Shown piece by piece: positions 3,375 to 21,761 of a stretch of DNA of 64,000 nt. Location of the stretch: the IMG/VR virus record IMGVR_UViG_3300031951_000001, positions 186,001 to 250,000 of that record. One strand, written 5' to 3'. The notes under the pieces are model-generated. The model did not search any database. It was not told the DNA's origin and saw only the letters and a program-made list of their open reading frames with translations. Numbering within the stretch: position 1 is the stretch's first letter; each line of letters opens with the position of its first letter. A program made the translations under genes and the position numbers.

Positions 3375-3390
3375 ATCAAATAAGTTTTTG

Positions 3391-6300: not shown

Positions 6301-9300
6301 TCCATAAGATTTGGAGAGAGTAGTAGTCCTGGACTTTTTGCCTTGAACGATACAACTTTATTGACCTCAATCAGAATTAACCAAAACAGTCCTCAGGAAA
6401 AAATAGTAATAGTTTCATTATCATCACCATTAATGACTGTTGTTGATTTATATTCATTACCAGGACAACAAGCGGTTTCGGGGGATATAATAGCAACTAA
6501 CAATTTTAATTTATTAGTTTCTACGGTAGATAATACGAACACATATAGATTATTACAATTAGATTTTATAACCGGTAATTTAGAAATAGAAGTACTATAT
6601 AATATAGGAGGAGCAAATATACGAGGTTTGTTCGAATACCAAGGTAACTTGTTCGCAACAACATCCAATGGATTATATCAGATAAACCCTAATTACCCCT
6701 ACCAATTTACCCAAGTTAACGCTACTACAACAAACCAAGATTCATCATCATCTATTTTATTTTGTAACCCAACTTATTTGTTACCACCACCAACACAAAC
6801 ACCGACTCCGACTCAAACACAAACGAATACCCCATCTAGATTACCTTTGGGTGAATTATGTAGATGTCATTATATAACTAACTATGAGAACAAACCTATC
6901 ACATTTACAGCAACAACTTGTGATTCTTCAATACCCCAAACTTATACGCTACCCGCTAATACAAGTTATCCTCCATCATGCTTCAAATTAGGTTCAGTAT
7001 ATAGTTTTAATGCTCAAGTAACAATCACATATTCTATAACACCTTGTGTATTTTGTAATGGTAAATATGTTTGTAACTCCGTATTGTGTCCTACACCTAC
7101 ACCAACTCCTACTAAAACTAGTACACCTACACCAACGTCACCATGTCAACCTCCCCAAGTTGGGGTTCAAACTTTTACCCAAGCTTGGTCAGTAAATAAC
7201 ACCTGTGTTGCCGCAGAGTTAGGTTATTATTTATTTACAACCGGTACAACTGAAGAGGCATGTCAGTCATTTGTTGGGTTCGCTGAAACTCCAGAAGGAA
7301 GTCAATATTGCCCTTCTTTAGGTACTAACACAATAACTCCATCAACCCAACAAAAAACTTTTGGTGTTTATCCTTATCCTGTAGAGATAGGAAGTAGACT
7401 TTATTCTACAGTCCCAACGTCATGTAACTGTCCATCTTTTTGGTTTAATGGGTGGGGCGGTCCTAATAATGACCCTGGCGCTCCTTTTTTGTTTCTTTCT
7501 AATGGCCCATATAAAGCTTGGTATAATGACGGGGTCATTGTAAACGGTGATAATACGTCTGTAAAAATAGCCACGATATCAGGATGTACCGTGATTGATA
7601 TAGAAATTTGTGAAGTGGTGGGATTCAATGTAAATATAATTGCGTCACCAGGTTCTGTCGATATGATATATAACTTTACGTCAACTCAACCTGTTAAATC
7701 CGCAGTTACTATTAATTTTACAAACATACTTCAAACATATACCGGAGACTCAATCTTTATCACCACAGGACTTACTTTAAATAGTGGTGAAACATCAACA
7801 TTTGTAACAGTTTCAAGAGATGTCGATTTTGATAATCTTACCTTAGGTTATTCTACTATAGATTTTTCAGTGACCTCTAATTTATACATTAATCCTGAAT
7901 TAATATATTTTAATTTCTCAATACCAACAATACCAACACCATCAAACAAATGTTACTGCTATGAATTAACAAACACGAGAACAGATGTAACCGCAATAGT
8001 CAAATATAGAACTTGCGAGAATGAAATAATTACAGATTATTTGAGCCCCCTTGAAACAATAAATGATTGTATAAGATTTAATTCAATTTCAGCTAGCTCA
8101 ATAGTCGATATTACTCAAATATCAGTTTGCGGTCCTCCTGATTATAGTTGCGTAACACCAAATGTACCATGTTATTGTTATAAATTAACTTATGATAATT
8201 CAGGTTATTTAGGTGCGATTCATTATATTGATTGTGCGGGTGAAAATCAAAGTATAACAAATACAACTCAATCATTATATGAAATTTGTGCCAGAGAAAT
8301 AACCGGAACTTTTAAATACAAGGCAGACCAATTAGGGGAATGTACCTCAACCACTCAATGTTCTCAATGTTGTACAACCAGTAAAGTTTTAGTTTTAACA
8401 AATGATTTCCCGAATGGTTCTCCTGGACCTACAGGGGTGGCCATCTATAACCCATCGAATGGTACATCAACTTTGATGAGTTTAACTTTAACAGGGTTAC
8501 CATATTCTCTTACTCACATTTACGATAACACCACAAACACAGGAAGAATGTGGATTGCTTTTGATGCCCCTGTACGTATAGAAGAATACACGCTTGACGC
8601 AAACTACAATCCTTCTTTTGATAGATATATTTTCATATCAGGAAATGAGTTTGAGATTGGAGAGTCGATAACTTATCTAAATTCAAATACTTTATTAAGT
8701 ACTAGACGGGGAACAAACCCAAGAAGAGTTGTTACAATAGATATATCTACACCAAATATTGACATCACCGTACCTCTAGTTAATACAATTTACACTATAC
8801 CATTAATTACTACTAATGCCGACGACATTACAAGTTTATTAGTGACCACTAATAATAGACTTATTGGTACTAGATATAGTGGAACATATACACAGAACGG
8901 TAGTTCAAATACAATTTTCCAAATTGACATGAACACAAATCAGCTCGAATATTTGGCGACATGGCCTGATGTTCCTTGGGAAGGCTGGTGGGACGGGATA
9001 TTCATAAACTGTAACAAATATTATAGGTTTGTTAATAATCAAGTTTCATTAAATCAATTATGGACATCCTCAACAAATTCTAATGGTATACCTACATATA
9101 GTTTAGTATTTAATAACAATAATTCATTATCAAACATATGGGACACATCTTCAAACCCTATTTGTAACACTTTTAATTTTAACCCTAACCAAATTTTATT
9201 AACACCCACACCTACTTTAACCCCAACAATAACTAAAACACCTACTAAAACACCTACCCCTACCGTAACCAAAACAAAAACTCCAACAGTTACTCCAACA

Positions 9301-12300
9301 TCAACTGATTATAAATCCGATTGTGCTTGTTATACTATAACTAACACTAGTCCATATAATTCTATTCCGATATTTTATTTTTATCGTAGATGTAAAACAA
9401 ACACACTAACGGTGGGTGTTGTTTATGGTAACACAACGTTTAGTGATTGTTATGTTCCTGGTTCGGTAACCGCATTCAACAACAATCCTAATTTAATTAT
9501 TACTTTGGGCGCGGAATGCAGTGATTGCAGCCAAGGATTTACATGTAATCCATGCCCATCTAAGACCCCAACTAAAACGCCTACCAACACTAAAACCCCA
9601 AGTAACACACCGACCAAGTCATTAACCCCAACCAAAACACCCACACCAACAATAACACCAACCGATTATCCTTATTCGGCGGACTGTAAGGTTTATTCTT
9701 TCAGTTTAATAACAGGTACTTTATATGGGTATGGGGTTGAGTCGGGGGACATAATCTATGAAATGGTATTACCAGTTCTAGGTGTTCCGACAAATATTGC
9801 AATATCTAATGTAAGTAATTTATTGTTTATATATTTTTCTCAAACTAATTTATTAATAACTTTTCAGTTTGATTATATTACAAATCAAATTATAGATGGG
9901 TCATTAACAACGTATGATATACCCGAACCAATTTTTAATCCAATAGAACAAAATCCTTATCAGAGTATAACTTCTATGGATAATGGACAAGGAGTATTTT
10001 TTACTTCACAAGGTTATAATCAAGAAAATTTAGAAACTTATTCTTTATTAACTTATGAATTAACCGGTACAATTACTTATTTATCCGATTTCCCCAATGG
10101 GTTATCTTCAAAAACAATAATTAGGGGTTCAAATAATTTAATTTTTGCATTGGTTGTAGAACAAAATTCATCCGATTGTGCAATACAACAATGGTATTGT
10201 GACGGGACCTTTGCTAACACGACTCTTCTTTATTCCTTTACATTACCATTATCGTATACGAATGGTACCTCTATATTCATTTATGATGGTGAATTTTATA
10301 TAGTTTCACAACAGTCATCACCTAATGGACCTCATATAGTATATACCGTTGACCCATACCAACCACACACATTGACTGAGGTTTCACAATTCACAATAGA
10401 ATTTGGGTATATAAATGATAGTGAATCTTTCGCTAATTGCAACCAGTTTGAATTTTACCAGTATCCTGACACTCCAACGTTAACTCCTACCCCAACATTA
10501 ACTAAAACTCCCACCCCAACAAGAACACAGACATCTACACAATTAACACCAACACCAACATCAACCAATTTGACTCAAACACCAACGGCAACAAATTTAA
10601 CCCCAACACCAACCCCTAATTGTTTTTGTACGAGCTTTAGAAATACTGTTAATTACGATGTAATTATTACTTTCAATACTTGTGATAAAAAAACAAAATC
10701 AAAATTATTAACACCTGATGGTACTCAAGGAAGTACATTTACAACTTGTGTCACGGATTACGTTGAGGATATTAGAATCAATGTAGTGTCGAATGGCCCA
10801 TGTGTTAGTGAGAGTTGCGGTAGCCCAACACCTACCCCCACAGTTACAAATACACAGACTCCGACAGTTACTTCATCTACAGGATTTATAAATGAGACTC
10901 CGACAGTAACCCCAACTAATACCGAAACCCCAACAATTACACCAACTAATACCGAAACCCCAACAATTACACCAACTAATAGTTCCACTCCTACAATGAC
11001 CTCAACTAATATTACCCCAACCCCAACTATAAGTTCAACACCATCACCAATAATCGAGACTTCAATTCTAATATCCGCAGAATATAAACCAGTCCCTAAT
11101 GGTGTTAATTATAATTTAGTTTTCAAATATAATTTTGTATCCAACACATTACAACCACTAATATCCCAGTCAGGTGAATCAATTCAAGGAATGTTATCAA
11201 CCGGTTTGGCTCACTCATATGATTTGAATACTAATACAGGATACGTTTGGACGAAGTCACCTAATTCATCACAAATAAATGAATATTCAATAATAAATTC
11301 AGATTATAATACATTATTTATAAGAACAATTACCTTGACTGGCTCATCATATGGTAAAGGTTTAACTTATATAAATGACACTACATTAATTAGTACGAGA
11401 AAAATAGGCGCTGAACAATGGGTTATTGAAATAAATATTGACCCGTCATTATCGAGCCCTATTGAGACTTTGAAATTTCAAGTACCGTTCAATCAGTCGG
11501 ATGATTATAGTGACTTAATGTTTACAAGTACAGGTAAATTTATATGGACAAACAATGGTCCATTAGGGTTCAATGTTGAGCAGTACATTTACGATACGGG
11601 GGAACTTAATTTTAGAGCACCTGCTTGTTGTACCCCAACCGCACTATGGCAATATAATGGGAATATTTATTCTTCTCAGTCGGGGGCAAATATGAGAATA
11701 AGATATGACTTAACAACCGCCGAAAAGACATTCATTTGTCCCCCAATCGGATGTGGAGAAACATCATGTGAAGACCCACTTAGTTGTATTTGTTCGGGAC
11801 CCTGTACGGTTGATTTTATATCTTTCGGAGGTTCTTCATTAGTGGAAGATAACAATGCCGAATTTGTGCCAAATATTGACCCAATTATTATTAATTTAAC
11901 AACCACTTTTGAGGAGGGTTCTATACAAATAACTTATAACATGGTTTCTAATAATCCTGTTATAGAAGCGATTAGAGTTAATTTTACAAATGTAATCGGT
12001 ACCCAGCTTGATTCTTGGTGGGCGGGAGAGCCAATAACTATTGATACTGGGGTTACAATATATTCAGGACAAACTTCAGGTTCTACTTTAGTCACACTTG
12101 AAGATAGTATTTATGATTTAGATAAAACAAGTTATTTTACTAATATCTCGATATACCCTCCTTATTTGAGTGGTATAACTACAATTGTGGAGACCAATGT
12201 TTTCCCAACCCCAACATCTACCGTAACATCAACAATAACCCCAACACCATCTATCACACCTAGTATAACCCCAACTAATACCCCCATATTCCCTCAAAAT

Positions 12301-14505
12301 ATTGAATTAATCTTGAGCACAAGTCTTGTTTATTATGTTGATTCATTCGAAATTATTTACAATTTGGTATCGAATTTACCACTAACTTATTATTTTGATT
12401 TGTTCTTTACAAATACCTTGGGTACAACAATTTATGGACCATTCCCAATTGAAACTGGAGTGTCAATAAACGTTGGTGAAGTTAGTGGAACAACATCAAT
12501 AATATTTGAAATACCCCCAAGTGTTTTAGATAGAACAAGTACCTTTAGTGGATTTACTTACGACCCATATTTTTATAGCGGAACGACCCAATTAAATGTT
12601 AATACGATGTTCCCAACCCCAACCCCAACAGTAACTATAACTCAAACCCCTCAATTTGACATAACTTCAACACCAACAAGAAGCGTAACCCCAACAAGAA
12701 CTCAAACTCCAACTCAATTGGCTTGTTCGGCAACCACTTCAATTATTAATACAAACACAGCAATAGTATTATCAAGAAAGAGTGATTTGGTATATAGTCA
12801 GCAAGGAACATTGTTCTATCCTATAACATTCACTTTAAGTGGTACTAGTCCAGTATACGATGCGACATCGACAACTGTACCGGTATGGGATACATCAAAT
12901 GTTAATAACGGTCCATTAAATAGAACTGGAGTTTGGACAAACTCAGGGCAACCTGTTGATATATGGATTGGAGATACATTCTGTTTTACAAGTGCAACAG
13001 ATAACAAGAGATATTACATAGGTATTGGGGCGGATAATGACTTTAGAATCCGACTCGACGGAGTACAGATTGTAAATTCTAGTATTGGTCCGTATAATAA
13101 TACAAATATACCATTCTTGTGGTGGCACGTTTATCCTATAACTGTTAATTCAGGAGCGCATACAGTTGAGGTCTATGGTTTAAATGACAACTCAATAGGT
13201 TCATTTGGATGTGAGATTTATGATAACACTCTATCCCAATTAACCGCAGCAACTTCAGTAAGTGACCTTAATATAATTTACAGTACAAGTGCATTAACAG
13301 CGGCTACTATAGTTCAGAGTATGGCGGGAGTTTATTTATCAAGCGGGTATACTTGTCCTTCAGGTTATGAATTAGACGTGTGTAAAAACTATTGTATTAG
13401 TTATGCTAATTGTCCATCACCAACTCCTACAAATACGCCATCTAATACACCAACAAAGAGTATAACACCAACTATAAGTTTAACACCGTCAATTACCCCT
13501 ACAATAAGTTTAACACCGTCAATTACCCCTACAATAAGTTTGACGCCATCACCAACCGCGTCACCATCACCACTCATTTGTCCATATCAAGTTGGAACTA
13601 AAGGATTTGGTTCTCCTATCTATAGGATAGGTTACAATGATTATACTAATTACATTTACGTGGTTACCACTGGTGGCACGGTTGTATTAGATAGTTCGTA
13701 CTTAACTATTGATACTTATCCAAATTCATTAAGTGGTGGAAGTGTAACTTATGCTAGTATGACATTTGCGCAAAGTACTTATAAGTATGTTTATGTTGGA
13801 CATGATGGGGATTTAAAGTATGTTGATTACTATGATATAACTAACCTTACTTCAGGTATAATATCCACCACTATAGAACCAACTGAGATAGATGTAGACA
13901 GAACCAATTCTTTTATAGGAATGATAGGGGTTAATGATGAATATAAACAAATAAACATTTCAACTCAATTAGTTAACTATACTGTTAATGTTAGTGCAAC
14001 CACTAATGGTGATATCGCTTGGTCCAGACTTAATGACACGTTTTGGATTGTTTCTACTGGAGACACGATTGTGTATATTGACCCAACGGCCAAAGATATA
14101 GTTGGTACAGATACTATTCCATCAGGAGGTTATAGTGGATATGGTAAACGATTACTTTATGACAATACTAATTCTTATACGTATTTACTTGTTGATAGTC
14201 AAAGATTATTTATATATGACGCCGTAGGTTCGGCAACATCTTATGTAGATTTAACTCCATACAGTGGAACTAATACAAGTATGACAATCGATATAAATAA
14301 TAACAAACTTTATATTCTAAATGTTGATGACAATGTGTTTGGATTAATTAAGATTGACATAACAACACTAACTGATGAAGGATTATCAGTACTTGGGACT
14401 TATAGTGGTAAGTCTAACGGAAGTATACTATATGAGCCAAATAATTCTGAAATTATATTGAGTCTTGAGCCATTTACTAATACGTTCTATATATTCTGTA
14501 CTTAA
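3391..14505 (+). CDS. Giant modular virion fibre/adhesin-like protein (~3700 aa)
   Basis: The N-terminal domain is paralogous to that of the next gene and resembles BppU N-terminal attachment domains. It contains repeated Ig-like, Cys-rich and beta-propeller modules, a PA14-like domain (~12760-13350), Pro/Thr linkers and no signal peptide. ATG at 3391 is preferred over TTG at 3388. Confidence 0.65.
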   Translation: MEFVIRKNATLPLLKMQIVKDGRGTYEDFMNFIETSTIYFSMQNSETGVMKINTKFAGYVEKEFIEPNSPPEYYIYYKFTKRETNKVGKYEGQFLLKNEIGTLVLPIREKLNITIKDSNLEDDLDYNECFVGQFQCCVIGPPGPNTPYEFELNANYSPGSVIADYTLTASKPVDATTTVLFENILVTYTGESITISTGITINRGQTTSSVEVVTDGDFSNLTLANYFDNVLITPSTSLTPDSIDIKQSFPPSVLTGDCYCYRFINTQGKPAKLRYTHCNGTPVETSISPNGSYQDCIQTNQYNVSSGVIAGVSQECFGPNYLCFTAGTPCKCYRYNYIGNGAQIGQIRYVDCQNNTISDNSTDSVVELCVSERLGEKYYTHTELDATCTTEADCSFCCSASHNLVLTTGISGEIDENVTKLYRYNTLTGNQTLILTIDPVSSPPYQALDVAHKFSPITNNGKIWISFKGLNSDNLPDQYIEEYDIDSSYNVQYNRRINIPWLNGLREIGHGLSLYNENNLILTLCLFGVNEEFVLLNINNTGDIPDANLIPTGIYSPFEPTQLPNTLDSEGRVNKIVDILITSDSKIVATNYGILANGAVNTILQIDITTNDYETFFYWPDVNNYVQNSYQGIFESCGTFYCFTYSENFNELWSVDTETYELNQVQPYNSNLRVVVGCSSLLVCQTQSFVPDTPCAPDAEGCNIAITGTVHNVSFTYEYTGDVVVYSPQDNTEDSFICYEDCINVYNIEALFCGHGDGTPTPGNPSTHFTVTFNFASEVNDVRIVIWGSGWGGNENFHIMTDQGVPTITSYYSCYSEIIGNTIYSGAEPYPPYKGGGIFNVNSNNDFTSIVISGDGGWAGSFIYLCTDSSLCFDNCTPILLSPLAQITLYNGTNQYSITLPYINGGPFPNPGTSYNYNAIAHTPNKLWISNFLFTSDPTNWYLLEWDLSLCPFSVTYNTRYVQSVDSGVTSIRFGESSSPGLFALNDTTLLTSIRINQNSPQEKIVIVSLSSPLMTVVDLYSLPGQQAVSGDIIATNNFNLLVSTVDNTNTYRLLQLDFITGNLEIEVLYNIGGANIRGLFEYQGNLFATTSNGLYQINPNYPYQFTQVNATTTNQDSSSSILFCNPTYLLPPPTQTPTPTQTQTNTPSRLPLGELCRCHYITNYENKPITFTATTCDSSIPQTYTLPANTSYPPSCFKLGSVYSFNAQVTITYSITPCVFCNGKYVCNSVLCPTPTPTPTKTSTPTPTSPCQPPQVGVQTFTQAWSVNNTCVAAELGYYLFTTGTTEEACQSFVGFAETPEGSQYCPSLGTNTITPSTQQKTFGVYPYPVEIGSRLYSTVPTSCNCPSFWFNGWGGPNNDPGAPFLFLSNGPYKAWYNDGVIVNGDNTSVKIATISGCTVIDIEICEVVGFNVNIIASPGSVDMIYNFTSTQPVKSAVTINFTNILQTYTGDSIFITTGLTLNSGETSTFVTVSRDVDFDNLTLGYSTIDFSVTSNLYINPELIYFNFSIPTIPTPSNKCYCYELTNTRTDVTAIVKYRTCENEIITDYLSPLETINDCIRFNSISASSIVDITQISVCGPPDYSCVTPNVPCYCYKLTYDNSGYLGAIHYIDCAGENQSITNTTQSLYEICAREITGTFKYKADQLGECTSTTQCSQCCTTSKVLVLTNDFPNGSPGPTGVAIYNPSNGTSTLMSLTLTGLPYSLTHIYDNTTNTGRMWIAFDAPVRIEEYTLDANYNPSFDRYIFISGNEFEIGESITYLNSNTLLSTRRGTNPRRVVTIDISTPNIDITVPLVNTIYTIPLITTNADDITSLLVTTNNRLIGTRYSGTYTQNGSSNTIFQIDMNTNQLEYLATWPDVPWEGWWDGIFINCNKYYRFVNNQVSLNQLWTSSTNSNGIPTYSLVFNNNNSLSNIWDTSSNPICNTFNFNPNQILLTPTPTLTPTITKTPTKTPTPTVTKTKTPTVTPTSTDYKSDCACYTITNTSPYNSIPIFYFYRRCKTNTLTVGVVYGNTTFSDCYVPGSVTAFNNNPNLIITLGAECSDCSQGFTCNPCPSKTPTKTPTNTKTPSNTPTKSLTPTKTPTPTITPTDYPYSADCKVYSFSLITGTLYGYGVESGDIIYEMVLPVLGVPTNIAISNVSNLLFIYFSQTNLLITFQFDYITNQIIDGSLTTYDIPEPIFNPIEQNPYQSITSMDNGQGVFFTSQGYNQENLETYSLLTYELTGTITYLSDFPNGLSSKTIIRGSNNLIFALVVEQNSSDCAIQQWYCDGTFANTTLLYSFTLPLSYTNGTSIFIYDGEFYIVSQQSSPNGPHIVYTVDPYQPHTLTEVSQFTIEFGYINDSESFANCNQFEFYQYPDTPTLTPTPTLTKTPTPTRTQTSTQLTPTPTSTNLTQTPTATNLTPTPTPNCFCTSFRNTVNYDVIITFNTCDKKTKSKLLTPDGTQGSTFTTCVTDYVEDIRINVVSNGPCVSESCGSPTPTPTVTNTQTPTVTSSTGFINETPTVTPTNTETPTITPTNTETPTITPTNSSTPTMTSTNITPTPTISSTPSPIIETSILISAEYKPVPNGVNYNLVFKYNFVSNTLQPLISQSGESIQGMLSTGLAHSYDLNTNTGYVWTKSPNSSQINEYSIINSDYNTLFIRTITLTGSSYGKGLTYINDTTLISTRKIGAEQWVIEINIDPSLSSPIETLKFQVPFNQSDDYSDLMFTSTGKFIWTNNGPLGFNVEQYIYDTGELNFRAPACCTPTALWQYNGNIYSSQSGANMRIRYDLTTAEKTFICPPIGCGETSCEDPLSCICSGPCTVDFISFGGSSLVEDNNAEFVPNIDPIIINLTTTFEEGSIQITYNMVSNNPVIEAIRVNFTNVIGTQLDSWWAGEPITIDTGVTIYSGQTSGSTLVTLEDSIYDLDKTSYFTNISIYPPYLSGITTIVETNVFPTPTSTVTSTITPTPSITPSITPTNTPIFPQNIELILSTSLVYYVDSFEIIYNLVSNLPLTYYFDLFFTNTLGTTIYGPFPIETGVSINVGEVSGTTSIIFEIPPSVLDRTSTFSGFTYDPYFYSGTTQLNVNTMFPTPTPTVTITQTPQFDITSTPTRSVTPTRTQTPTQLACSATTSIINTNTAIVLSRKSDLVYSQQGTLFYPITFTLSGTSPVYDATSTTVPVWDTSNVNNGPLNRTGVWTNSGQPVDIWIGDTFCFTSATDNKRYYIGIGADNDFRIRLDGVQIVNSSIGPYNNTNIPFLWWHVYPITVNSGAHTVEVYGLNDNSIGSFGCEIYDNTLSQLTAATSVSDLNIIYSTSALTAATIVQSMAGVYLSSGYTCPSGYELDVCKNYCISYANCPSPTPTNTPSNTPTKSITPTISLTPSITPTISLTPSITPTISLTPSPTASPSPLICPYQVGTKGFGSPIYRIGYNDYTNYIYVVTTGGTVVLDSSYLTIDTYPNSLSGGSVTYASMTFAQSTYKYVYVGHDGDLKYVDYYDITNLTSGIISTTIEPTEIDVDRTNSFIGMIGVNDEYKQINISTQLVNYTVNVSATTNGDIAWSRLNDTFWIVSTGDTIVYIDPTAKDIVGTDTIPSGGYSGYGKRLLYDNTNSYTYLLVDSQRLFIYDAVGSATSYVDLTPYSGTNTSMTIDINNNKLYILNVDDNVFGLIKIDITTLTDEGLSVLGTYSGKSNGSILYEPNNSEIILSLEPFTNTFYIFCT
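10912..10980 (+). repeat. Perfect 30-bp tandem repeat (2.3 copies) in a PT linker
   Basis: ccaactaataccgaaaccccaacaattaca repeated exactly. Confidence 0.9.
13474..13541 (+). repeat. Perfect 30-bp tandem repeat (about 2.3 copies) in a PT linker
   Basis: ataagtttaacaccgtcaattacccctaca repeated exactly. Confidence 0.9.
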
Positions 14506-14555
14506 TTATATAATTACAATGTCTAAATCTTTACTTATTAAAACGTTTACCAAAG

Positions 14556-14563
14556 TATTTATA
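14556..14563 (+). promoter_or_regulatory. TATTTATA putative late promoter
   Basis: Exact motif 15 nt before ATG 14579. Confidence 0.6.
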
Positions 14564-14578
14564 GAATAAAATCTTTGG

Positions 14579-17500
14579 ATGGAATTTTTCATTAAAAAAG
14601 GCGCGACCCTTCCTTTATTAAAACTTAACATTGTTGACAATGGAAGAAGCGATTATAACAACTTTCTAAATACGTTAGAGTTGTCATCTTTATTCTTTTC
14701 AATGACTAATGTTGAAAACGGTACCCCAAAGATAACAAACAAACCTGCAGGTGTTGGCGGCGAATACCCAAACTATTTTATATACTATCAGTTTCAAAAT
14801 ACCGACACAACAAAAGAGGGTAGATTTGAGGGTGAGTTTGTTATAAAAAATGAGTACGGTAATAATGTTTTAACATTAGGTGAAAAACTTTATGTTAACA
14901 TAACCGAGTCATTTATATTAGATGATTTAGATTACGTTTCATGTTACATAGTTGATTATGCTTGTTGCAGTAATCCTATACCAGTGCCATTACCTCAACC
15001 TTCAAGTACTCCTACTCCTACACCTACTGTAACTGACTCTCAATTATCTCTAACTCTACAAGGATTTATAAATCCAGGGTCAGTTGTTATAGATTATGTT
15101 CTAACATCAAATAGATTATTTTCACAGGAACTTACAATGTCGTTCTCAAATTTACTTGGGGTGATTGTTGGAAGTCCTGTATTAATAACAACCGGTGTAA
15201 CTTTGAGTGTTGGTGAATTTACGGGAACTACCCAAGTAATTCTTCCTGATGATTTTCAAAATTTAAATCGTGAAAGTTTATTTTTTGGTAATACCATAAA
15301 TCTTACAGGTTTAACGTATACGACTTACTATCAAAATTCAGTATTCTTTGCAACACCAACACCCACCCCAACTCCAACACCAACTGAAACAATTGTTTGT
15401 GAATGTTTTGAAATTGTTGCTCCATTAGCGAATGGTTCATATTCTTATATCGATTGTAGTGGAATTGAACAACCAGTTGTTGAATTAGGTATAGGTGAAT
15501 CTTCTAGAGTTTGTGTAGGTAATTCTAAAATAAACGCGTTTGACGGAGCCGAATTCTATGTTGTTGGATTATGTTCAGACTGTCTATTACCGACCCCTAC
15601 CCCCACCCCAACTCAAACTGAGGGTGAGATTTTTATGGGTAATATAATAGAAAATATTAACCTTAATGAAACTTTTACAACGAATGAAGAAGAATTAAAT
15701 AGGATTTTACGCGAAAGACCTAAAAAATTAAATATTGATTTACCATTTAAAGATGGGGTCATAAATGTTAATCTAACTAGACGAAATATTTACGAAAATG
15801 ATTTTAGAATATCAAATGAATTCGGAGAGACACTTTATTCAAAATTAGGAGAACATTATGAAGGTATTATTGTTGGTAGTCAAAATTCTACAGTTTCTTT
15901 AAGCATTACAAGCGAAGGGTTCAGTGGGTCCTTACAAGATGAAGGATTAGTTGTTGATATTAATAACATCAGTGGATTTACTCATCACTGCCAAGAAGTA
16001 TTTGAGGAAACTAAACATGATTGTAATACATACAATATTGATTTTCCCGAATTAGATAACTACATCTCCCCAAACCAAGAAATGTTTAATAACTTTGAGG
16101 GTGAGATTATGGCTAACATTAATTTTGAGAATTTGAATTCTTACGTTACCATGGTTGCCAACAAAAACGTGAGGTATCTCTTGGAGGTTGATTACGATAT
16201 ATATCAATATTTTGGTAATGATTTACAGGCAACTACTAATTACATCACCGCGTTATTTAATTCTATATCCGCTATCCATGCCGCTGAAGGGGTGTCGATA
16301 ACAATGAGTGAGATTAAATTTTGGACTTCGGGCGAGTCTCCATATAGGACTTACGGTCATACAATACCATGCACCGCGAACACAAGTAATCTAGACTGCG
16401 CATTAAAAAATTATAGGCAATATTATAAAAATAATAATTTAACTTTCAATGGAGATGTTAGAATGTTGTTAACAGTCGGATGGCCCAATCCTGTTGGTGG
16501 TAGTGCTAGATATAGCTCGGCGTATACTCCGGGTGTGTGCTCCCCCGATTTTTATAATTGTCTTTTCCATCAGTTAAGACCAACAACTGTCAGTCCTGGT
16601 AGCCCACCTCCTGAAGGATATGTCGATGGAGGTAGTAATTTAAGTGTTTACTACGGAAATGCCAATGGGTGGAATGTAATTGCGGGTGCTCACGAAATTG
16701 GTCATACTCATGGATGTTCTCATACATTCAGTTCGGTTTGGAATTGTAACTACACAATAGGTAGCACAAATGTTGCGGGTACATGTTGTTTAGATTGTTG
16801 TTCAGGTCTTGCAAATTGCGCTTGCGTTGGCGGTACAACTATACAAAACCCAACTAACGGTACATGTATAGCGTCAGGTGCGACAATTATGTCTTATAAT
16901 ACAAGACAACCTATATTCGGACCTCAACCACAACAGAAAATGGTCAATACGATAAATGCGGCACTTTGTTTACAAAATTTTACTACACCAACCCCTACAC
17001 CAACCCCTACAAGAACAAGTACAACACCAACTCCAACTCCTACAAGAAACACACCAACTCCAACTAAAACAAGTAATTGGGATTGTGCTGCGTCTTTCAA
17101 TATAAATATTCCAAATACAACCTCAGTAACTATAAGTGGAGTAACATTCGTAAAGTCGGTATCTCAAGTGATGTCAACTCAAAGTTTTGCGATTATACCT
17201 TCGTCATGCATAGGTTCAAGTAATATTAGTGGAGTTAACATATTAACTTCTCTAACTGATACTTCGGGTAACTACACCATGAGTTCCTCGACTTTATTGA
17301 CAAGTATCGCATTATCGTTTGGGGCTTTACAAGCAACTGATGTGATTACGTTTAGTGCAAATAATGGTACTACGTTTGTCGGAATTTGCCAAGGGTGTTG
17401 TGGTCAAAATGGCGCCGCCAATCAAATTGTTGGTACAACTTTATGTAGCCAGCTCGGAAACGTAGATGGAGGTGCATTCCGAGTCATTGTTAATTCAACA

Positions 17501-18820
17501 GAACCGTTCAATCAACTAAATGTAAAAATAAGCAGTCCTTTAAATAACGGGTGGGGTAAGTTTTTAAAAATTAATAATTTTAGAACTTTAGGAACCTCAA
17601 TCACCCCAACTAAAACACCAACAAGAACTGCAACACCAACAGTTACAAAAACCGCCAATTTTGTTGACGTAACTCCAACATCGACACCTACTGTAACGTT
17701 GACTAAAACCCTTACATCCACCCCAACAAGAACATTAACACCTACAAGGACATCCACTCAAACCCCAACAGTAAGTAAAACAAGTAATTTAATTGTTGAA
17801 AGTCCGACCTCTACCCCAACAAGAACATTAACACCTACTCCGACAAGAACCCTCACACCAACTAAATCAACTAATATTACATTAACCCTCACACCAACGA
17901 GAACAAAAACCCCTACTCCGACTAAATCGTCTAATACATCATTAACACCTACTCCGACAAGAACAAAAACCCCAACACCGACAAGAACAAAAACCCCAAC
18001 ACCGACTAAATCGTCTAATACATCATTAACCCCAACACCGACAAGAACAAAAACCCCAACACCGAGTACTTCAATATCGATTTCATTGTGTGATATTTTA
18101 AGTGTTGCAAATACAACGGGTATTATATACAAATATGATTACGTATCGAATACTGTTACCGAATTGCCGGTCAGCGGTAGACAAGTATTACCGAGTGATA
18201 TTGCCGTTTCAGAAAATTATTTATTTACGATATCTTCTAACACTATTAGAAGGTTCCAAATAACTAGAAACCCATGGACCGCAACTAACCCAACCGATTT
18301 CATATATCCGTCAGGTACATTCGCAACAAGTAACAACGGTTTATTTGCATTGAGCGACTCAACACTTATATCATTTAACACTTTAAATCAAATTATATCT
18401 GTTAATTTAACCAATTTGACAACAACAGTTTTATTTAGTTTACCTGCGGGTAGGTCAATTGCGGGAGATATAATATACACAACAAACAATAGATATATAA
18501 TTGTCAACCGAAGTATATCCACATCTACCACATTTGTTTCTCAATTTGATTCATCGGGTAACCCAATGGGTGAAATGAGTATGGCAAGTATTACATTAGT
18601 TAACGGAAGTTTATTTATTTATAATAGTGAATTATATATTCAAAGGCAGTCCACCCCTCCACATAATTATAAATTAACATTCCCATCAACAATAAGTCCT
18701 GTGTTAAGTACCGCCACAGTAACATCACTAGGATTTGCTCAACCACAAAACTGTATAAGTTTTGATTTTCCTGTTTCACCAACACCTACTAAAACAGTCA
18801 CCCCGACAAAAATACTATAG
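14579..18820 (+). CDS. Modular virion fibre-like protein with an M12/reprolysin-like zinc metalloprotease domain
   Basis: HEIGHTHGCSH (HExxHxxGxxH, 16691-16723), Met-turn IMSY (16886-16897) and reprolysin-like EVDYDIY segment. It shares the N-terminal domain with 3391..14505 and has PT linkers and a C-terminal propeller. Confidence 0.75.
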   Translation: MEFFIKKGATLPLLKLNIVDNGRSDYNNFLNTLELSSLFFSMTNVENGTPKITNKPAGVGGEYPNYFIYYQFQNTDTTKEGRFEGEFVIKNEYGNNVLTLGEKLYVNITESFILDDLDYVSCYIVDYACCSNPIPVPLPQPSSTPTPTPTVTDSQLSLTLQGFINPGSVVIDYVLTSNRLFSQELTMSFSNLLGVIVGSPVLITTGVTLSVGEFTGTTQVILPDDFQNLNRESLFFGNTINLTGLTYTTYYQNSVFFATPTPTPTPTPTETIVCECFEIVAPLANGSYSYIDCSGIEQPVVELGIGESSRVCVGNSKINAFDGAEFYVVGLCSDCLLPTPTPTPTQTEGEIFMGNIIENINLNETFTTNEEELNRILRERPKKLNIDLPFKDGVINVNLTRRNIYENDFRISNEFGETLYSKLGEHYEGIIVGSQNSTVSLSITSEGFSGSLQDEGLVVDINNISGFTHHCQEVFEETKHDCNTYNIDFPELDNYISPNQEMFNNFEGEIMANINFENLNSYVTMVANKNVRYLLEVDYDIYQYFGNDLQATTNYITALFNSISAIHAAEGVSITMSEIKFWTSGESPYRTYGHTIPCTANTSNLDCALKNYRQYYKNNNLTFNGDVRMLLTVGWPNPVGGSARYSSAYTPGVCSPDFYNCLFHQLRPTTVSPGSPPPEGYVDGGSNLSVYYGNANGWNVIAGAHEIGHTHGCSHTFSSVWNCNYTIGSTNVAGTCCLDCCSGLANCACVGGTTIQNPTNGTCIASGATIMSYNTRQPIFGPQPQQKMVNTINAALCLQNFTTPTPTPTPTRTSTTPTPTPTRNTPTPTKTSNWDCAASFNINIPNTTSVTISGVTFVKSVSQVMSTQSFAIIPSSCIGSSNISGVNILTSLTDTSGNYTMSSSTLLTSIALSFGALQATDVITFSANNGTTFVGICQGCCGQNGAANQIVGTTLCSQLGNVDGGAFRVIVNSTEPFNQLNVKISSPLNNGWGKFLKINNFRTLGTSITPTKTPTRTATPTVTKTANFVDVTPTSTPTVTLTKTLTSTPTRTLTPTRTSTQTPTVSKTSNLIVESPTSTPTRTLTPTPTRTLTPTKSTNITLTLTPTRTKTPTPTKSSNTSLTPTPTRTKTPTPTRTKTPTPTKSSNTSLTPTPTRTKTPTPSTSISISLCDILSVANTTGIIYKYDYVSNTVTELPVSGRQVLPSDIAVSENYLFTISSNTIRRFQITRNPWTATNPTDFIYPSGTFATSNNGLFALSDSTLISFNTLNQIISVNLTNLTTTVLFSLPAGRSIAGDIIYTTNNRYIIVNRSISTSTTFVSQFDSSGNPMGEMSMASITLVNGSLFIYNSELYIQRQSTPPHNYKLTFPSTISPVLSTATVTSLGFAQPQNCISFDFPVSPTPTKTVTPTKIL
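17810..18065 (+). repeat. Imperfect nested tandem repeats (TPTPTRTK / TPTKSSNTSL units)
   Basis: Repeated ccgacaagaacaaaaaccccaaca and actaaatcgtctaatacatcattaac units. Confidence 0.8.
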
Positions 18821-18852
18821 AATTAAATTAAAAAGATAATTATATTAAAAAC

Positions 18853-21729
18853 ATGTTGCAAATTATAACCATAGAAAGTGTCCATTTTGATGGTGAAATT
18901 GCGCAAATTTTATTCCAACCGTTTAATTCCGAACAAATAATTAATTTAGGTTCGGTAACATTACCTTATACATATGAACCCCCTATCGGTGTCGAAATAT
19001 ATGGTACTTACACGATATTGACACAGGAAGACCCGAGCTGCCCTTATTACATTACCGCACCTTATCCCACACCTACTAACACCCCAACTATATCTTTAAC
19101 AAAATCACAGACACCGACACCATCAATTACAAGCTCACCAACTTTAAGTTTAGACCCATGTAAAATACCATTAACACCCTCATCAACAGTTGAGCCAACT
19201 CCGACAAATTCAATAAAACCAACAAGAACTCCAACACCTACTAATAGTAAAATACCTTGTAGTCCTGACCCAACTCCGTCAAATACTCCAACTCCTAGTA
19301 TAACAAGAACTAACAAGCCAACTAGAACTCCGACCAAGACTCCAACTAAAACACCTACCAGTACTCCTTCTAATACCCCAACTATTAGTGTCACATCATC
19401 CAACACTCCTTCTAATACACCCACAAAAACAATTACAAAAACTCCAAGTTCAACAGTAACAAAAACACCAACCAATACCCCAACAAAAACAACCCAACCA
19501 ATTGCCCCAACAAAAACCCCAACTAAATCTGTTACACCTACAATCACAAACACAAAAACCAATACCCCGTCAATAACTCCTACTAAAACACCAGCATCAA
19601 CGACAACTCCTACAAAAACTATAGAACCAACCGCAACTCCACAGTCAATTGCGTCTTGTAATGATACGGTAAATATTAGAAATGGTAGTAGTGGTACTTA
19701 CACGTATGAAGTAGAATTTGGAAATGATACAGGACCGATTAAATTAAATTATAACGCGGTATCGGTACCTGATAGATTTACTGTAGTATGGGATGGAATT
19801 GAAGTGATAAATACAGGATTTGTTGGTTCTCCGACTTACGATTCACAATTAAATGCTCTTGGTTACCCTGGTGTTAGTGGTCCGGGTCGAGGTGTCGCCG
19901 CGTTCACCAAATCGTCCTCAACCCCAACTAGTGCATTTATAACAATATTAGCACCACTCCCCGGTACTGCATGGGATTTTAGTTTCTCATGTCCCGTACC
20001 TCCACCAACTCAAGCCCCTACCAAAACACCTACTTCAACTCGAGGAGCAACACCGACACCAACAAAAACATCCACTCCTACCAATACTTCTCAAGCGGCC
20101 CCACCACCTACTAAAACTCCAACTAAAACTTCAACACCAACAATGACAAGAACTCCGACAAATACACCAATAGGTCAGACACCAACAATGACAAGAACTC
20201 CGACAATGACTAAAACCCCAACGGTTACGCCTACATATACTTCGAGCGTAAATTGTTTCTGCTATAGAGTATTAACTAACCCAGGTATTGCTGTTGGTAG
20301 TTTATTTTACTACGACTGTTACACATCTCAATATGAGGAATCTCAAGTCTTATCGTCTAATACCACCACAACAATATGTGTACAATCTGGTTTCCAAATC
20401 TTTGAGAGTGGAGCGTATCCTGTATTAGTCGGTAATTGTTATGGTGGGCAGTGCATTCCTCTTACATCCACACCTACAACCACTAAAACTCCAACTAAAA
20501 CAATTGCACCATCTAGAACTCCGTCACACACTCCAACTAAAACCCCAACTCAAACTAGTTCTGATATTAATTTATCTTTGGGAGCAATATTCGGACCTGG
20601 CTCAACTATTATTGATTATGTATTGAGTGCTAGTAGAGTTTTATCTGAAACAATAACACTTTCATTCACAAATACTATTGGTGTAATAGTTGGTTCACCA
20701 ATTCAAGTTATCACGGGTGTAACAATAACTTCAGGTATGACTAGTGGGGTTACTCGAGTTACATTGGTTAACGATTTTTATAATCTATCCAAAATAAATT
20801 CATATTCAGGAATAACTTTAAACGGAAGCGGAGGAACATTTAATTACAACATAACTGAAACATCCATTTTCCCAACTAATACTCCAACACTAACTAAAAC
20901 ACCAACTAATACGCCAACCGTTACTACAACAAGAACTCCCGCCGCAACCCCAACAAAAACAATTCCACCTACTCAAACTCAATTCCCTGGACCAACGTCT
21001 ACTCCAACACAAACCCCAACTTTAACAGTTACAAAAACTATACCTCCAACTAAAACCCCAACTAGAACAGTAACTCCTACTTTAAGTATTAGTCCAACTA
21101 TAACTAAAACACCAACAGTAACAAGAACAAATACACCAACACCAACTAATACCGTAAGTATAACCCCTACAATAAGTAATACACCGTCTATTACACCTAC
21201 AATAACCGACACCCCAACAAATACACCTTCTATAACCCCTACTAAAACATCAACACCTTCAAATACACCAACAAAAACTAGTACCCCAACAAATACGCCA
21301 ACAAAAACTAGTACCCCAACAAATACGCCAACATTAAGTATAACACCAACAATAAGTAATACACCGACAATTACACCAACACCGGATTTATATCCTCCAA
21401 TAATTAATGGTGTTGATGTAACAATTACAATTACAGGTACTTCGGTTCAAATAGTTAATACGAATTTCATATATAATCGTATTTGGGTTTGGGATGGTCC
21501 GACTAATAACGCCGGTGATTTCCTTAATGAGATTGCACCTGGAGGAGGAATAGGAGATTGGCTTCCATTATCATTATTCACAACAGGTAAGATTGGTTTG
21601 TCTTATGTTGCACCTCCTACATACCAAACTTGTTATAGTATATACACGTTAGATATGGTAGATTGTTTGGCTCCATTACCAACTAGAACCCCAACAACCA
21701 CACCAACACCAACACCAAGTCCAATTTAA
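18853..21729 (+). CDS. Pro/Thr-rich (mucin-like) modular virion protein
   Basis: Much of the protein is TPT-type repeats. It has one Ig-like and one Cys-rich module shared with the two upstream genes and is preceded by the variant motif TAATTATA (18837-18844). Confidence 0.6.
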   Translation: MLQIITIESVHFDGEIAQILFQPFNSEQIINLGSVTLPYTYEPPIGVEIYGTYTILTQEDPSCPYYITAPYPTPTNTPTISLTKSQTPTPSITSSPTLSLDPCKIPLTPSSTVEPTPTNSIKPTRTPTPTNSKIPCSPDPTPSNTPTPSITRTNKPTRTPTKTPTKTPTSTPSNTPTISVTSSNTPSNTPTKTITKTPSSTVTKTPTNTPTKTTQPIAPTKTPTKSVTPTITNTKTNTPSITPTKTPASTTTPTKTIEPTATPQSIASCNDTVNIRNGSSGTYTYEVEFGNDTGPIKLNYNAVSVPDRFTVVWDGIEVINTGFVGSPTYDSQLNALGYPGVSGPGRGVAAFTKSSSTPTSAFITILAPLPGTAWDFSFSCPVPPPTQAPTKTPTSTRGATPTPTKTSTPTNTSQAAPPPTKTPTKTSTPTMTRTPTNTPIGQTPTMTRTPTMTKTPTVTPTYTSSVNCFCYRVLTNPGIAVGSLFYYDCYTSQYEESQVLSSNTTTTICVQSGFQIFESGAYPVLVGNCYGGQCIPLTSTPTTTKTPTKTIAPSRTPSHTPTKTPTQTSSDINLSLGAIFGPGSTIIDYVLSASRVLSETITLSFTNTIGVIVGSPIQVITGVTITSGMTSGVTRVTLVNDFYNLSKINSYSGITLNGSGGTFNYNITETSIFPTNTPTLTKTPTNTPTVTTTRTPAATPTKTIPPTQTQFPGPTSTPTQTPTLTVTKTIPPTKTPTRTVTPTLSISPTITKTPTVTRTNTPTPTNTVSITPTISNTPSITPTITDTPTNTPSITPTKTSTPSNTPTKTSTPTNTPTKTSTPTNTPTLSITPTISNTPTITPTPDLYPPIINGVDVTITITGTSVQIVNTNFIYNRIWVWDGPTNNAGDFLNEIAPGGGIGDWLPLSLFTTGKIGLSYVAPPTYQTCYSIYTLDMVDCLAPLPTRTPTTTPTPTPSPI
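21268..21333 (+). repeat. Perfect 30-bp tandem repeat (2.2 copies) in a PT linker
   Basis: acaaaaactagtaccccaacaaatacgcca repeated exactly. Confidence 0.9.
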
Positions 21730-21732
21730 CAT

Positions 21733-21761
21733 TTGACAACCTAACCTTCAATATTTATAAT
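21733..21761 (+). promoter_or_regulatory. Consensus sigma70-type promoter TTGACA-N17-TATAAT, overlapped by a TATTTATA motif
   Basis: TTGACA 21733-38, 17-nt spacer, TATAAT 21756-61; TATTTATA at 21752-59; directly upstream of the polymerase gene. Confidence 0.8.

Follow-up and report, generated by a model that had tools for sequence, protein, structure and literature searches.

What would a bacteriophage do with a protease of the ADAM type, and what does it mean that this protease, complete with a propeptide, sits in the middle of a large multidomain protein? The question is raised by a stretch of 64,000 nucleotides, hereafter the window, which corresponds to bases 186001-250000 of the virus record IMGVR_UViG_3300031951_000001, a genome available as a single record of 322,372 bp and listed as 100% complete. 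On the plus strand of the window, an unbroken open reading frame (ORF) at 14579-18820 encodes a carrier protein of 1413 residues in which globular domains are strung on proline/threonine-rich (PT) linkers. An original prediction, made from the letters and the translated reading frames, had placed in this region an intact reprolysin-like zinc metalloprotease with its prodomain, embedded in a putative virion fibre and captured from the host. We report here how the enzyme, its latency, its origin and its possible display on the phage particle appear once the sequence is compared with its homologs and with known structures.

A metalloprotease of the ADAM type

The range given by the original prediction, 15640-16975, lies within this single ORF; it starts on M353/G354 and ends on L798/Q799, so that it brackets the prodomain and the catalytic domain. 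The catalytic metzincin domain, which has the adamalysin fold, occupies residues 528-798 (16160-16972; this and all other features of the carrier are on the plus strand). Residues 528-776 are matched by the Pfam model PF13688, Reprolysin_5, with an E-value of 1e-12 and a score of 49.2 bits for a curated cut-off of 27. Weaker matches, around the respective cut-offs, come from two sister models, Reprolysin_4 and Reprolysin_2 (Reprolysin_4 reaches 25.2 bits on the excised segment, for a cut-off of 22), and the founding model PF01421, Reprolysin, gives 13.1 bits and stays under its cut-off of 20.8. No glycoside hydrolase or lyase domain is matched by Pfam in the 1413-residue protein.

The zinc-binding motif HEIGHTHGCSH covers residues 705-715 (16691-16723), with the residues H705, E706, H709 and H715, and the Met-turn methionine is M771 in the motif TIMSY (16889-16891). 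In an alignment of 40 homologs, the H, E, G, H, G and H of HExxHxxGxxH and the M, S and Y of the Met-turn are unchanged. The invariant or near-invariant positions of the same alignment comprise HYxG in the upstream domain, the cysteine at C482, the extended motifs H-E-x-G-H-x-x-G-x-x-H-T, T-x-M-S-Y and F-G-P-x-P, one aspartate and several cysteines.

A family profile and an AlphaFold model, both built on this 40-sequence alignment and covering residues 355-800, lead to the same protein family. Against the PDB, the profile retrieves snake venom metalloproteinases at an E-value of 1e-16 and the ADAM17 zymogen at 7e-15 (profile positions 18-310). The model, which has a predicted local distance difference test score (pLDDT) of 74.8 and a predicted template modelling (TM) score (pTM) of 0.80, displays the canonical metzincin order of strands and helices in the catalytic domain. 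When it is compared with the PDB by Foldseek, the top matches are the ADAM17 zymogen structures containing both prodomain and metalloproteinase (E-values of 3.7e-12 to 9e-11, over 375-490 columns), followed further down by snake venom metalloproteinases (TM score by target of 0.72-0.77), ADAM33, ADAM22, the catalytic domains of TACE and profragilysin; the Foldseek probability is 1.00 for ADAM17, ADAM33 and many snake venom metalloproteinases. In view of these Pfam, profile and Foldseek scores, the metzincin observation is real and far from chance, and the description of the enzyme as an intact reprolysin-like zinc metalloprotease is borne out by the Reprolysin_5 match, the zinc motif, the Met-turn and the ADAM17 and snake venom matches of both profile and model.

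One residue weighs against a strict assignment. An aspartate immediately after the third zinc histidine (HExxHxxGxxHD) is the signature that separates the adamalysins from the other metzincins; here the position is held by Thr716, and threonine is near-invariant at this place in the bacterial and phage family. Because of this threonine in place of aspartate, we file the protease as M12B-like (Reprolysin_5) and not as a strict adamalysin. With this reserve, the sequence makes it almost certain that the enzyme belongs to the adamalysin/ADAM-type (M12B-like, Reprolysin_5) zinc metalloproteases and is encoded as a zymogen, its proteolytic activity being a prediction.

A propeptide and a candidate cysteine switch

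The region upstream of the catalytic domain had been described as prodomain-like. It is in fact homologous to the ADAM17 propeptide in both sequence and fold: the isolated ADAM17 propeptide is matched by the family profile at an E-value of 3.5e-6, and the Foldseek alignment with the ADAM17 zymogen covers the propeptide and the catalytic domain alike. Since the profile matches both the zymogen and the isolated propeptide of ADAM17, we consider the upstream domain to be a true homolog of the ADAM propeptide. It extends over residues 353-476 (15635-16006) and is modelled as an all-beta domain, the first 120 residues of the segment having a pLDDT above 90. It is followed by a variable linker at residues 477-527 (16007-16159) that separates it from the catalytic domain and is modelled as disordered (residues 123-167 of the segment). 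From the model, this linker is the likely site of any activation cleavage.

The candidate cysteine switch, H480-D481-C482-N483, begins at 16016 as originally reported, and its cysteine, Cys482 (16022-16024), is kept in 38 of the 40 homologs and in all 13 homologs of the phage type described below. In the profile alignment, the conserved cysteine of the family is four residues off Cys184, the switch cysteine of ADAM17, and both cysteines are found at the end of the propeptide, directly ahead of the variable linker. On the other hand, C482 falls within the stretch that the model leaves disordered, which counts against its role as a switch; for this reason, we infer the ligation of the zinc by C482 from its conservation and position.

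M353 (15635-15637), just ahead of the propeptide, is in register with the methionine at which stand-alone phage homologs begin. In the sequence it has the appearance of a gene-fusion scar, and an internal start at this codon may yield a free, protease-led protein.

Continuity and layout of the carrier protein

PT-coding repeats are present in many genes of this genome, and they give rise to many short cross-matching joints among contigs; the 1413-residue ORF could in principle be an assembly chimera joined through such near-identical repeats. Contigs from four studies, one public lake or freshwater run each, were compared across 14300-18900. In two runs of different studies, one single Logan contig spans 14572-17997 with 0 differences, and in the two further runs overlapping contigs cover the same interval, again without a difference. 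The short joints seen at the locus match over no more than about 21 letters on one side and arise from one PT repeat matching another. Furthermore, two copies of the locus in IMG/VR are identical and one is 84% identical, and the architecture is unchanged on these three contigs. A misassembly through PT repeats is rejected for 14572-17997, where the independent contigs agree without mismatch, and the probability that the ORF is a chimera is negligible. The same protein is found in a public protein collection without 8 residues of its stalk (residues 1123-1130, 17945-17968), a difference that reflects either a variation in repeat copy number or an assembly collapse.

The carrier begins with an immunoglobulin (Ig)-like beta-sandwich, residues 1-130 (14579-14968), which is a candidate virion-docking domain resembling BppU_N. 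A first PT linker, read from the sequence (residues 131-152, 14969-15034), leads to domain A (residues 153-258, 15035-15352), which has paralogs in the 3705-residue and 958-residue proteins encoded on either side. A second linker (residues 259-269, 15353-15385) precedes domain B (residues 270-337, 15386-15589), which is small and rich in cysteines and opens with a CxC motif. Such a cysteine-rich domain opening with CxC is common to the three PT-linker proteins encoded here (ORFs 3388-14505, 14579-18820 and 18853-21729). The propeptide, linker and catalytic domain then follow, bracketed by PT linkers as had been noticed from the start: one upstream (residues 338-347, 15590-15619) and one downstream (residues 802-833, 16982-17077).

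Beyond the protease are found domain C (residues 834-1005, 17078-17593), for which an Atlas search gave no usable lead (best score 0.84), then a long stalk rich in Thr, Pro, Lys and Arg (residues 1006-1167, 17594-18079), which carries the indel mentioned above, and finally a C-terminal domain (residues 1168-1395, 18080-18763) present in at least 7 paralogous copies in the other PT-linked giants of the genome. The likeness of this last domain to a beta-propeller is a lead only; we refer to it below as propeller-like. Both the protease and the accessory domains are rich in cysteines. The 1413-residue carrier has no signal peptide, and the C-terminal domain of type IX secretion system (T9SS) cargo, PF18962, finds no match in it at E-values up to 1.

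An old phage lineage of a Bacteroidota enzyme

An exhaustive search with residues 355-800 retrieves 1195 homologs at E-values up to 0.001. The cellular homologs inspected, named representatives of which come from Aquimarina, Flavobacteriaceae, Spirosomataceae and Lacihabitans, have a signal peptide of the Bacteroidota type, and most of those with Pfam data have the T9SS domain PF18962. The best 80 loci among 185,579 species genomes belong nearly all to Bacteroidota, with some Ignavibacteria and two Acidobacteriota, and the identity of their best segment is at most 28%. Both observations agree with the earlier statement that bacterial M12-type metzincins are normally secreted and are common in Bacteroidota.

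Thirteen sequences, including that of the window, are of a distinct, phage type: PT linkers abound in them, and the hydrophobic N-terminal stretch of the cellular homologs is missing. Most phage-type homologs open directly with the prodomain, following the pattern M-x-x-x-L-L-x-x-x-N-x-x-x-T-F-E. Their mutual identity is 29-52%, and at most about 28-33% to any cellular protein. The zinc ligands, the catalytic glutamate, the Met-turn, FGPQP and the switch cysteine are nevertheless kept in 13 of the 13, and this retention of active-site and switch residues at 29-52% identity argues for continued selection on both catalysis and latency in the phage clade. In a maximum-likelihood tree of 149 sequences, midpoint-rooted and obtained by a quick search, the 13 phage-type sequences form one group with a Shimodaira-Hasegawa-like approximate likelihood ratio (SH-aLRT) support of 84; the 14-member set made of these 13 and one cellular sequence has a support of 99.

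What remains of the proposed capture of a host protease is thus its source, the host phylum, and not its recency: a recent capture is rejected by the best cellular identity of about 28-33% and by the single clade formed by the phage sequences. That the transfer went from bacteria to phage is inferred from the family being far more widely distributed among cells. By its sequence, the protease gene belongs to an old and diversified phage lineage in which two parts of the cellular enzymes, the signal peptide and the C-terminal domain of T9SS cargo, appear to have been lost.

A cassette that changes carrier

The protease is present in a single copy in this genome, which has three clusters of PT-linked giants. 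In a different lineage (L016/L017, 4882-12894), the cassette lies inside a protein of 2671 residues, with identities of 49% for the protease, 39% for domain C, which travels with it, and 38% for the propeller-like domain. Over its first 360 residues, that protein has 71% identity with the product of another gene of the genome studied here (161972-165481), the C-terminal part of which matches PHROGs annotated as baseplate wedge subunit. Elsewhere, protease-led genes occur in tandem, two in L001 and L018 and three in L019-L021. In another relative (L004:549-3383), a protein of 944 residues (P0017) has Reprolysin_5 followed by a Glyco_hydro_cc domain in one polypeptide and, judging by these domains, would be a combined protease and glycosidase. 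These comparisons indicate that the cassette made of prodomain, catalytic domain, domain C and propeller-like domain moves between carrier proteins. The cysteine-rich domains, the pairing with a glycoside hydrolase in one relative and the two or three tandem copies in others suggest that the enzyme is used outside the cell.

The phage and its probable host

The genome is that of a jumbo myovirus with distant T4-like traits, namely a tail sheath, a gp13-like neck protein, gp32, a RecA-family (UvsX-like) recombinase and a DnaB-like helicase; it also encodes a ribonucleotide reductase and a family B DNA polymerase. The phage is present in many lake and freshwater metagenomes. When 50,697 genomes of isolated phages were searched by tblastn with the whole carrier and with its N-terminal domain, no match was found. 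By its tail sheath, the nearest isolate is Microcystis phage Mel-JY01, at 31% identity, which has little bearing on the host.

Three features of the genome point to the host. A Shine-Dalgarno core, even of four bases, is found upstream of only 5 of the 277 genes. The Bacteroidota promoter pattern TTTG-N17-23-TAnnTTTG occurs 56 times for about 10 expected genome-wide, and 26 of these 56 motifs (46%) are intergenic, for a share of intergenic sequence in the genome of 8.6%. No genome-wide enrichment is seen for the sigma-70 consensus. Outside the window (locus L007), the genome encodes the ribosomal protein bS21 (genome positions 116341-116496, minus strand; 32.7 bits for a cut-off of 27). Freshwater phages with bS21 and genomes of up to 331 kb have been described, with hosts predicted, on the basis of a CRISPR (clustered regularly interspaced short palindromic repeats) spacer, gene affiliations and bS21 similarity, to be Bacteroidetes and mostly Flavobacteriia (Chen et al., PMC9723584), and the bS21 gene of the present genome fits this group. 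Because of the scarce Shine-Dalgarno sites, the Bacteroidota-type promoters and the match with the bS21 phage group, the host is probably a member of the Bacteroidota, and these sequence features make a Flavobacterium-like bacterium probable.

The N-terminal domain and a possible display on the virion

Is the enzyme carried by the phage particle? At 47% identity, the N-terminal Ig-like domain recurs at the head of the adjacent 3705-residue protein (3388-14505, plus strand), another PT-linker giant, in which no enzyme domain is recognised. It has 62 metagenome homologs at 41-78% identity, many of which are stand-alone proteins of about 145 residues. Its model (pLDDT 78) is an Ig-like sandwich for which the top three PDB matches given by VIA-align are baseplate chains of the phages 80alpha, TP901-1 (BppU residues 18-127) and NF5, with Z scores of 8.0-8.3; about 100 residues are aligned with the N-terminal domain of TP901-1 BppU and its 80alpha and NF5 counterparts, with a root-mean-square deviation (rmsd) of 2.8-3.9 A. 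Foldseek matches of the domain reach an E-value of about 2e-3, and a language-model search returned, as a lead only, viral clusters some of which have BppU_N. The model is thus compatible with a docking function for the N-terminal domain, which may alternatively serve to decorate the capsid.

Several observations weigh against display. The Z scores of the baseplate matches are barely above those of antibody domains (7.7), and the Pfam model BppU_N does not match the N-terminal domain. By its sequence, the domain leads into a PT linker and, unlike in BppU, seemingly not into a trimerising helix; classical fibres have trimeric shafts, unlike the PT-linked beads of the carrier. The locus has a glycosyltransferase gene on one side and the DNA polymerase gene on the other, outside any obvious baseplate module, and no RNA run is listed as holding the protease gene. 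Finally, most phage-type homologs start at the prodomain and have no recognisable docking domain, from which it follows that attachment to the virion is no general feature of the clade. On balance, we give the display of this protein on the particle an even chance, and the case for the carrier as a virion fibre, which the original prediction proposed, is circumstantial.

A model for a latent surface protease, and its alternatives

The model that we propose combines the latency of the enzyme with its transport by the particle. The carrier, having no signal peptide, would be made and folded in the cytoplasm of the host, where the propeptide, with Cys482 on the zinc, would keep the enzyme latent and harmless during assembly. 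The N-terminal domain would dock the protein on the particle, where it would form a flexible appendage. Once lysis has brought the protein into oxidising lake water, the catalytic and accessory domains would form disulfides from their many cysteines. Activation would occur only outside the cell, where the switch cysteine would be oxidised or displaced, or the linker at residues 477-527 would be cut. Since the docking domain lies upstream of the propeptide, a cleavage in this linker would free the enzyme, domain C and the propeller-like domain from the particle; an activation without cleavage would leave the enzyme tethered. The active protease would then cut proteins of the host surface coat, such as T9SS-anchored adhesins and glycoproteins or adhesin filaments, and would thereby give the tail access to the outer membrane or free the progeny from debris, as the protein counterpart of a glycan depolymerase. 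Bacteroidota are coated with T9SS-anchored proteins and adhesin filaments, and because of this cover a protease makes biological sense for this host group; by analogy with glycan depolymerases, these molecules are our tentative and rather doubtful choice for the substrate class, for which the original prediction had named S-layer, sheath or biofilm protein. Taken as a whole, a latent, probably particle-borne enzyme that cuts surface proteins is the best explanation that we can offer, and we regard it as evenly poised between right and wrong. In a wider and more speculative form, which we put forward as doubtful, the freshwater jumbo phages of Bacteroidota would carry one to three particle-borne ADAM-like 'sheddase' zymogens armed outside the cell. 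In the present phage, cleavage of the enzyme's own prodomain linker would launch it together with the propeller-like domain as targeting device, so as to strip T9SS-anchored proteins from cells before or after infection.

The protease may, however, be absent from the particle: it would be stored in the cytoplasm, freed at lysis, activated outside and, in soluble form, digest surface proteins, matrix or debris. This would keep the progeny from being trapped, as with a receptor-destroying enzyme, or open the way to neighbouring cells. We consider this unlikely, yet it accommodates the phage-type homologs, most of the clade, that begin with the prodomain and lack a docking domain, the absence of a signal peptide together with the cysteine-rich domains, and the position of the gene outside a recognisable tail module; moreover, a cleavage of the linker between prodomain and catalytic domain would detach the enzyme from the N-terminal domain anyway. 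What fits a soluble factor less well is that the cassette is fused here behind a conserved N-terminal domain common to the neighbouring giant, and that in another lineage it is found inside a different large carrier, a pattern that display explains more easily; the top three structural matches of the N-terminal domain, which are baseplate proteins, also speak for the particle.

The two remaining alternatives assign the enzyme to other tasks altogether. The inactive ectodomains of some ADAMs serve as receptors, and ADAM22 is among the structural matches of the model, so that the domain could be a pseudo-enzyme used as a binding module, like the silent ADAMs; the unchanged zinc ligands, catalytic glutamate and Met-turn in 13 divergent phage sequences speak against it. 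Flavobacteriia, for their part, are degraders of proteins, and the gene could be an auxiliary metabolic gene that boosts the protein foraging of the host, an idea to which the polymer-degradation genes noted in phages (PMC9723584) lend some colour; without a signal peptide or a T9SS C-terminal domain, however, the protein would not be exported by a living host cell. A binding module or a foraging gene is, in our opinion, very improbable. The maturation of the phage's own proteins, which the original prediction had already raised for the fibres and in which the protease would trim PT-linked fibres or other virion proteins during or after assembly, is also improbable, if slightly less so. The genome offers many multidomain PT proteins as possible substrates, and jumbo phages are known to process their virion proteins extensively (PMC7824862). 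A cysteine-switch zymogen with many predicted disulfide cysteines suits extracellular action and not the reducing cytoplasm, however; its nearest cellular relatives are secreted T9SS cargo, and the two or three divergent tandem copies and the glycoside hydrolase fusion of other phages fit varied external targets better.

Comparison with known systems

The closest structural parallel of the latent surface protease proposed here is the ADAM17 (TACE) zymogen, whose beta-rich propeptide likewise ends in a cysteine and is joined by a linker to a metzincin domain with HExxHxxGxxH and a Met-turn. The sequence identity to ADAM17 and to the ADAM/adamalysin (M12B) enzymes is, however, only about 12-15%. 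The phage protease has a threonine where ADAM17 has an aspartate after the third histidine and a cysteine-rich insert between this histidine and the Met-turn; it is devoid of the disintegrin, transmembrane and furin-site features of ADAMs, and it lies in the middle of a phage carrier, whereas the corresponding part of ADAM17 is the N-terminus of a secreted or membrane protein. The P-I metalloproteinases of snake venoms (adamalysin II, acutolysin, BaP1, trimerelysin II) are the top profile matches of the catalytic domain, with E-values of 1e-16 to 1e-11, but only this domain is aligned, the disulfide pattern is different, an aspartate follows the motif, and the biology of these animal toxins is unrelated.

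The nearest cellular homologs are the 'M12 family metallo-peptidases' of Bacteroidota and the wider FCB (Fibrobacterota-Chlorobiota-Bacteroidota) group (Aquimarina, Lacihabitans, Chryseobacterium, Saprospiraceae), which align over 95-100% of residues 355-800 and share the conserved cysteine, HYxG, HExxHxxGxxHT, TIMSY and FGPQP. They differ by an identity of 24-33% and by their own signal peptide and T9SS C-terminal domain, both absent in the phage clade; we know of no such Bacteroidota M12 peptidase that has been characterised biochemically. Fragilysin (BFT) of Bacteroides fragilis also combines a prodomain with an adamalysin-like catalytic domain and is among the fold and profile matches, but with profile E-values of 0.002-0.007 and an rmsd of about 16 A over the whole zymogen it is no close relative. 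Its latency relies on an aspartate and not on a cysteine switch.

The proposed role, that of a particle enzyme removing a surface barrier, recalls the glycan depolymerases of phage tailspikes and tail fibres. These are hydrolases or lyases of glycans carried by trimeric beta-helical spikes, whereas here we would have a zymogenic metalloprotease on a PT-linked and probably flexible chain. Full-text literature searches returned no precedent for a phage tail or fibre with a metzincin or reprolysin. Jumbo phages have been surveyed comparatively, and that survey reports other metallopeptidases and none of the ADAM-like kind in fibres; no mention of this protease is found in PMC9723584 and its supplement or in the boreal jumbophage paper. 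The enzyme thus belongs to a known family, and its setting in shuffled, PT-linked phage proteins devoid of a signal peptide is, to our knowledge, new.

The enzymes known on phage particles attack glycans (capsule, lipopolysaccharide, exopolysaccharide) or peptidoglycan. A latent ADAM-type endoprotease on a phage, if confirmed, would mean that proteins, too, are among the surface barriers open to degradation by phages. If freshwater jumbo phages do carry sets of such zymogens armed outside the cell, the use of proteolysis to reach receptors, or to destroy them, would be a strategy general among phages that has gone unrecognised until now. The clade further shows that the ADAM-type propeptide and its cysteine are old and widespread in bacteria and their viruses, and the locus offers a clear case of enzyme cassettes shuffled among phage carriers by means of PT linkers. 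If active, these proteases could serve as tools against the protein-rich biofilms of flavobacterial fish pathogens; furthermore, since these phages are abundant in lakes, they bear on carbon turnover.

Neighbouring genes

The carrier gene is flanked by genes for two other PT-linker proteins on the same strand. Upstream, the ORF of the 3705-residue giant is listed from a TTG at 3388; an ATG at 3391 gives a start in MEF like that of its paralog and is likelier. Downstream, a protein of 958 residues (18853-21729) contains domain A and a C-terminal module common with the protease-bearing protein of L001. Directly ahead of the PT proteins, also on the plus strand, a gene at 969-3341 encodes a TylF-like O-methyltransferase fused to an HtrL_YibB glycosyltransferase-like domain. 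Related genes occupy the genome stretch 182388-185591 and L005:1-5739, and genes for an N-acetylglucosamine (GlcNAc)-transferase, a methyltransferase and an HtrL_YibB protein are found at the same place in L005. The phage may glycosylate its own Thr/Pro linkers.

The relative L005, of 255 kb, is syntenic with the window. Its gene order comprises the glycosyltransferase genes, then proteins of 672 residues (with the N-terminal domain), 704 residues, 145 residues (stand-alone), 884 residues and 716 residues, and continues downstream with PolB, the gp13-like neck protein and a superoxide dismutase fusion. At L005:10001-10438, the Ig-like domain is a separate gene of 145 codons placed 9 bases ahead of the 884-residue ORF; in the window the domain is fused.

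In the window, a perfect TTGACA-17-TATAAT (21733-21761, plus strand) occupies the short gap ahead of the DNA polymerase gene. Further on, a protein of 513 residues encoded on the minus strand (26077-27618) contains an Fe/Mn superoxide dismutase domain (residues 36-225) together with a long extension, and its gene stands next to that of the T4 gp13-like neck protein, an arrangement also found in the relatives L005 and L006.

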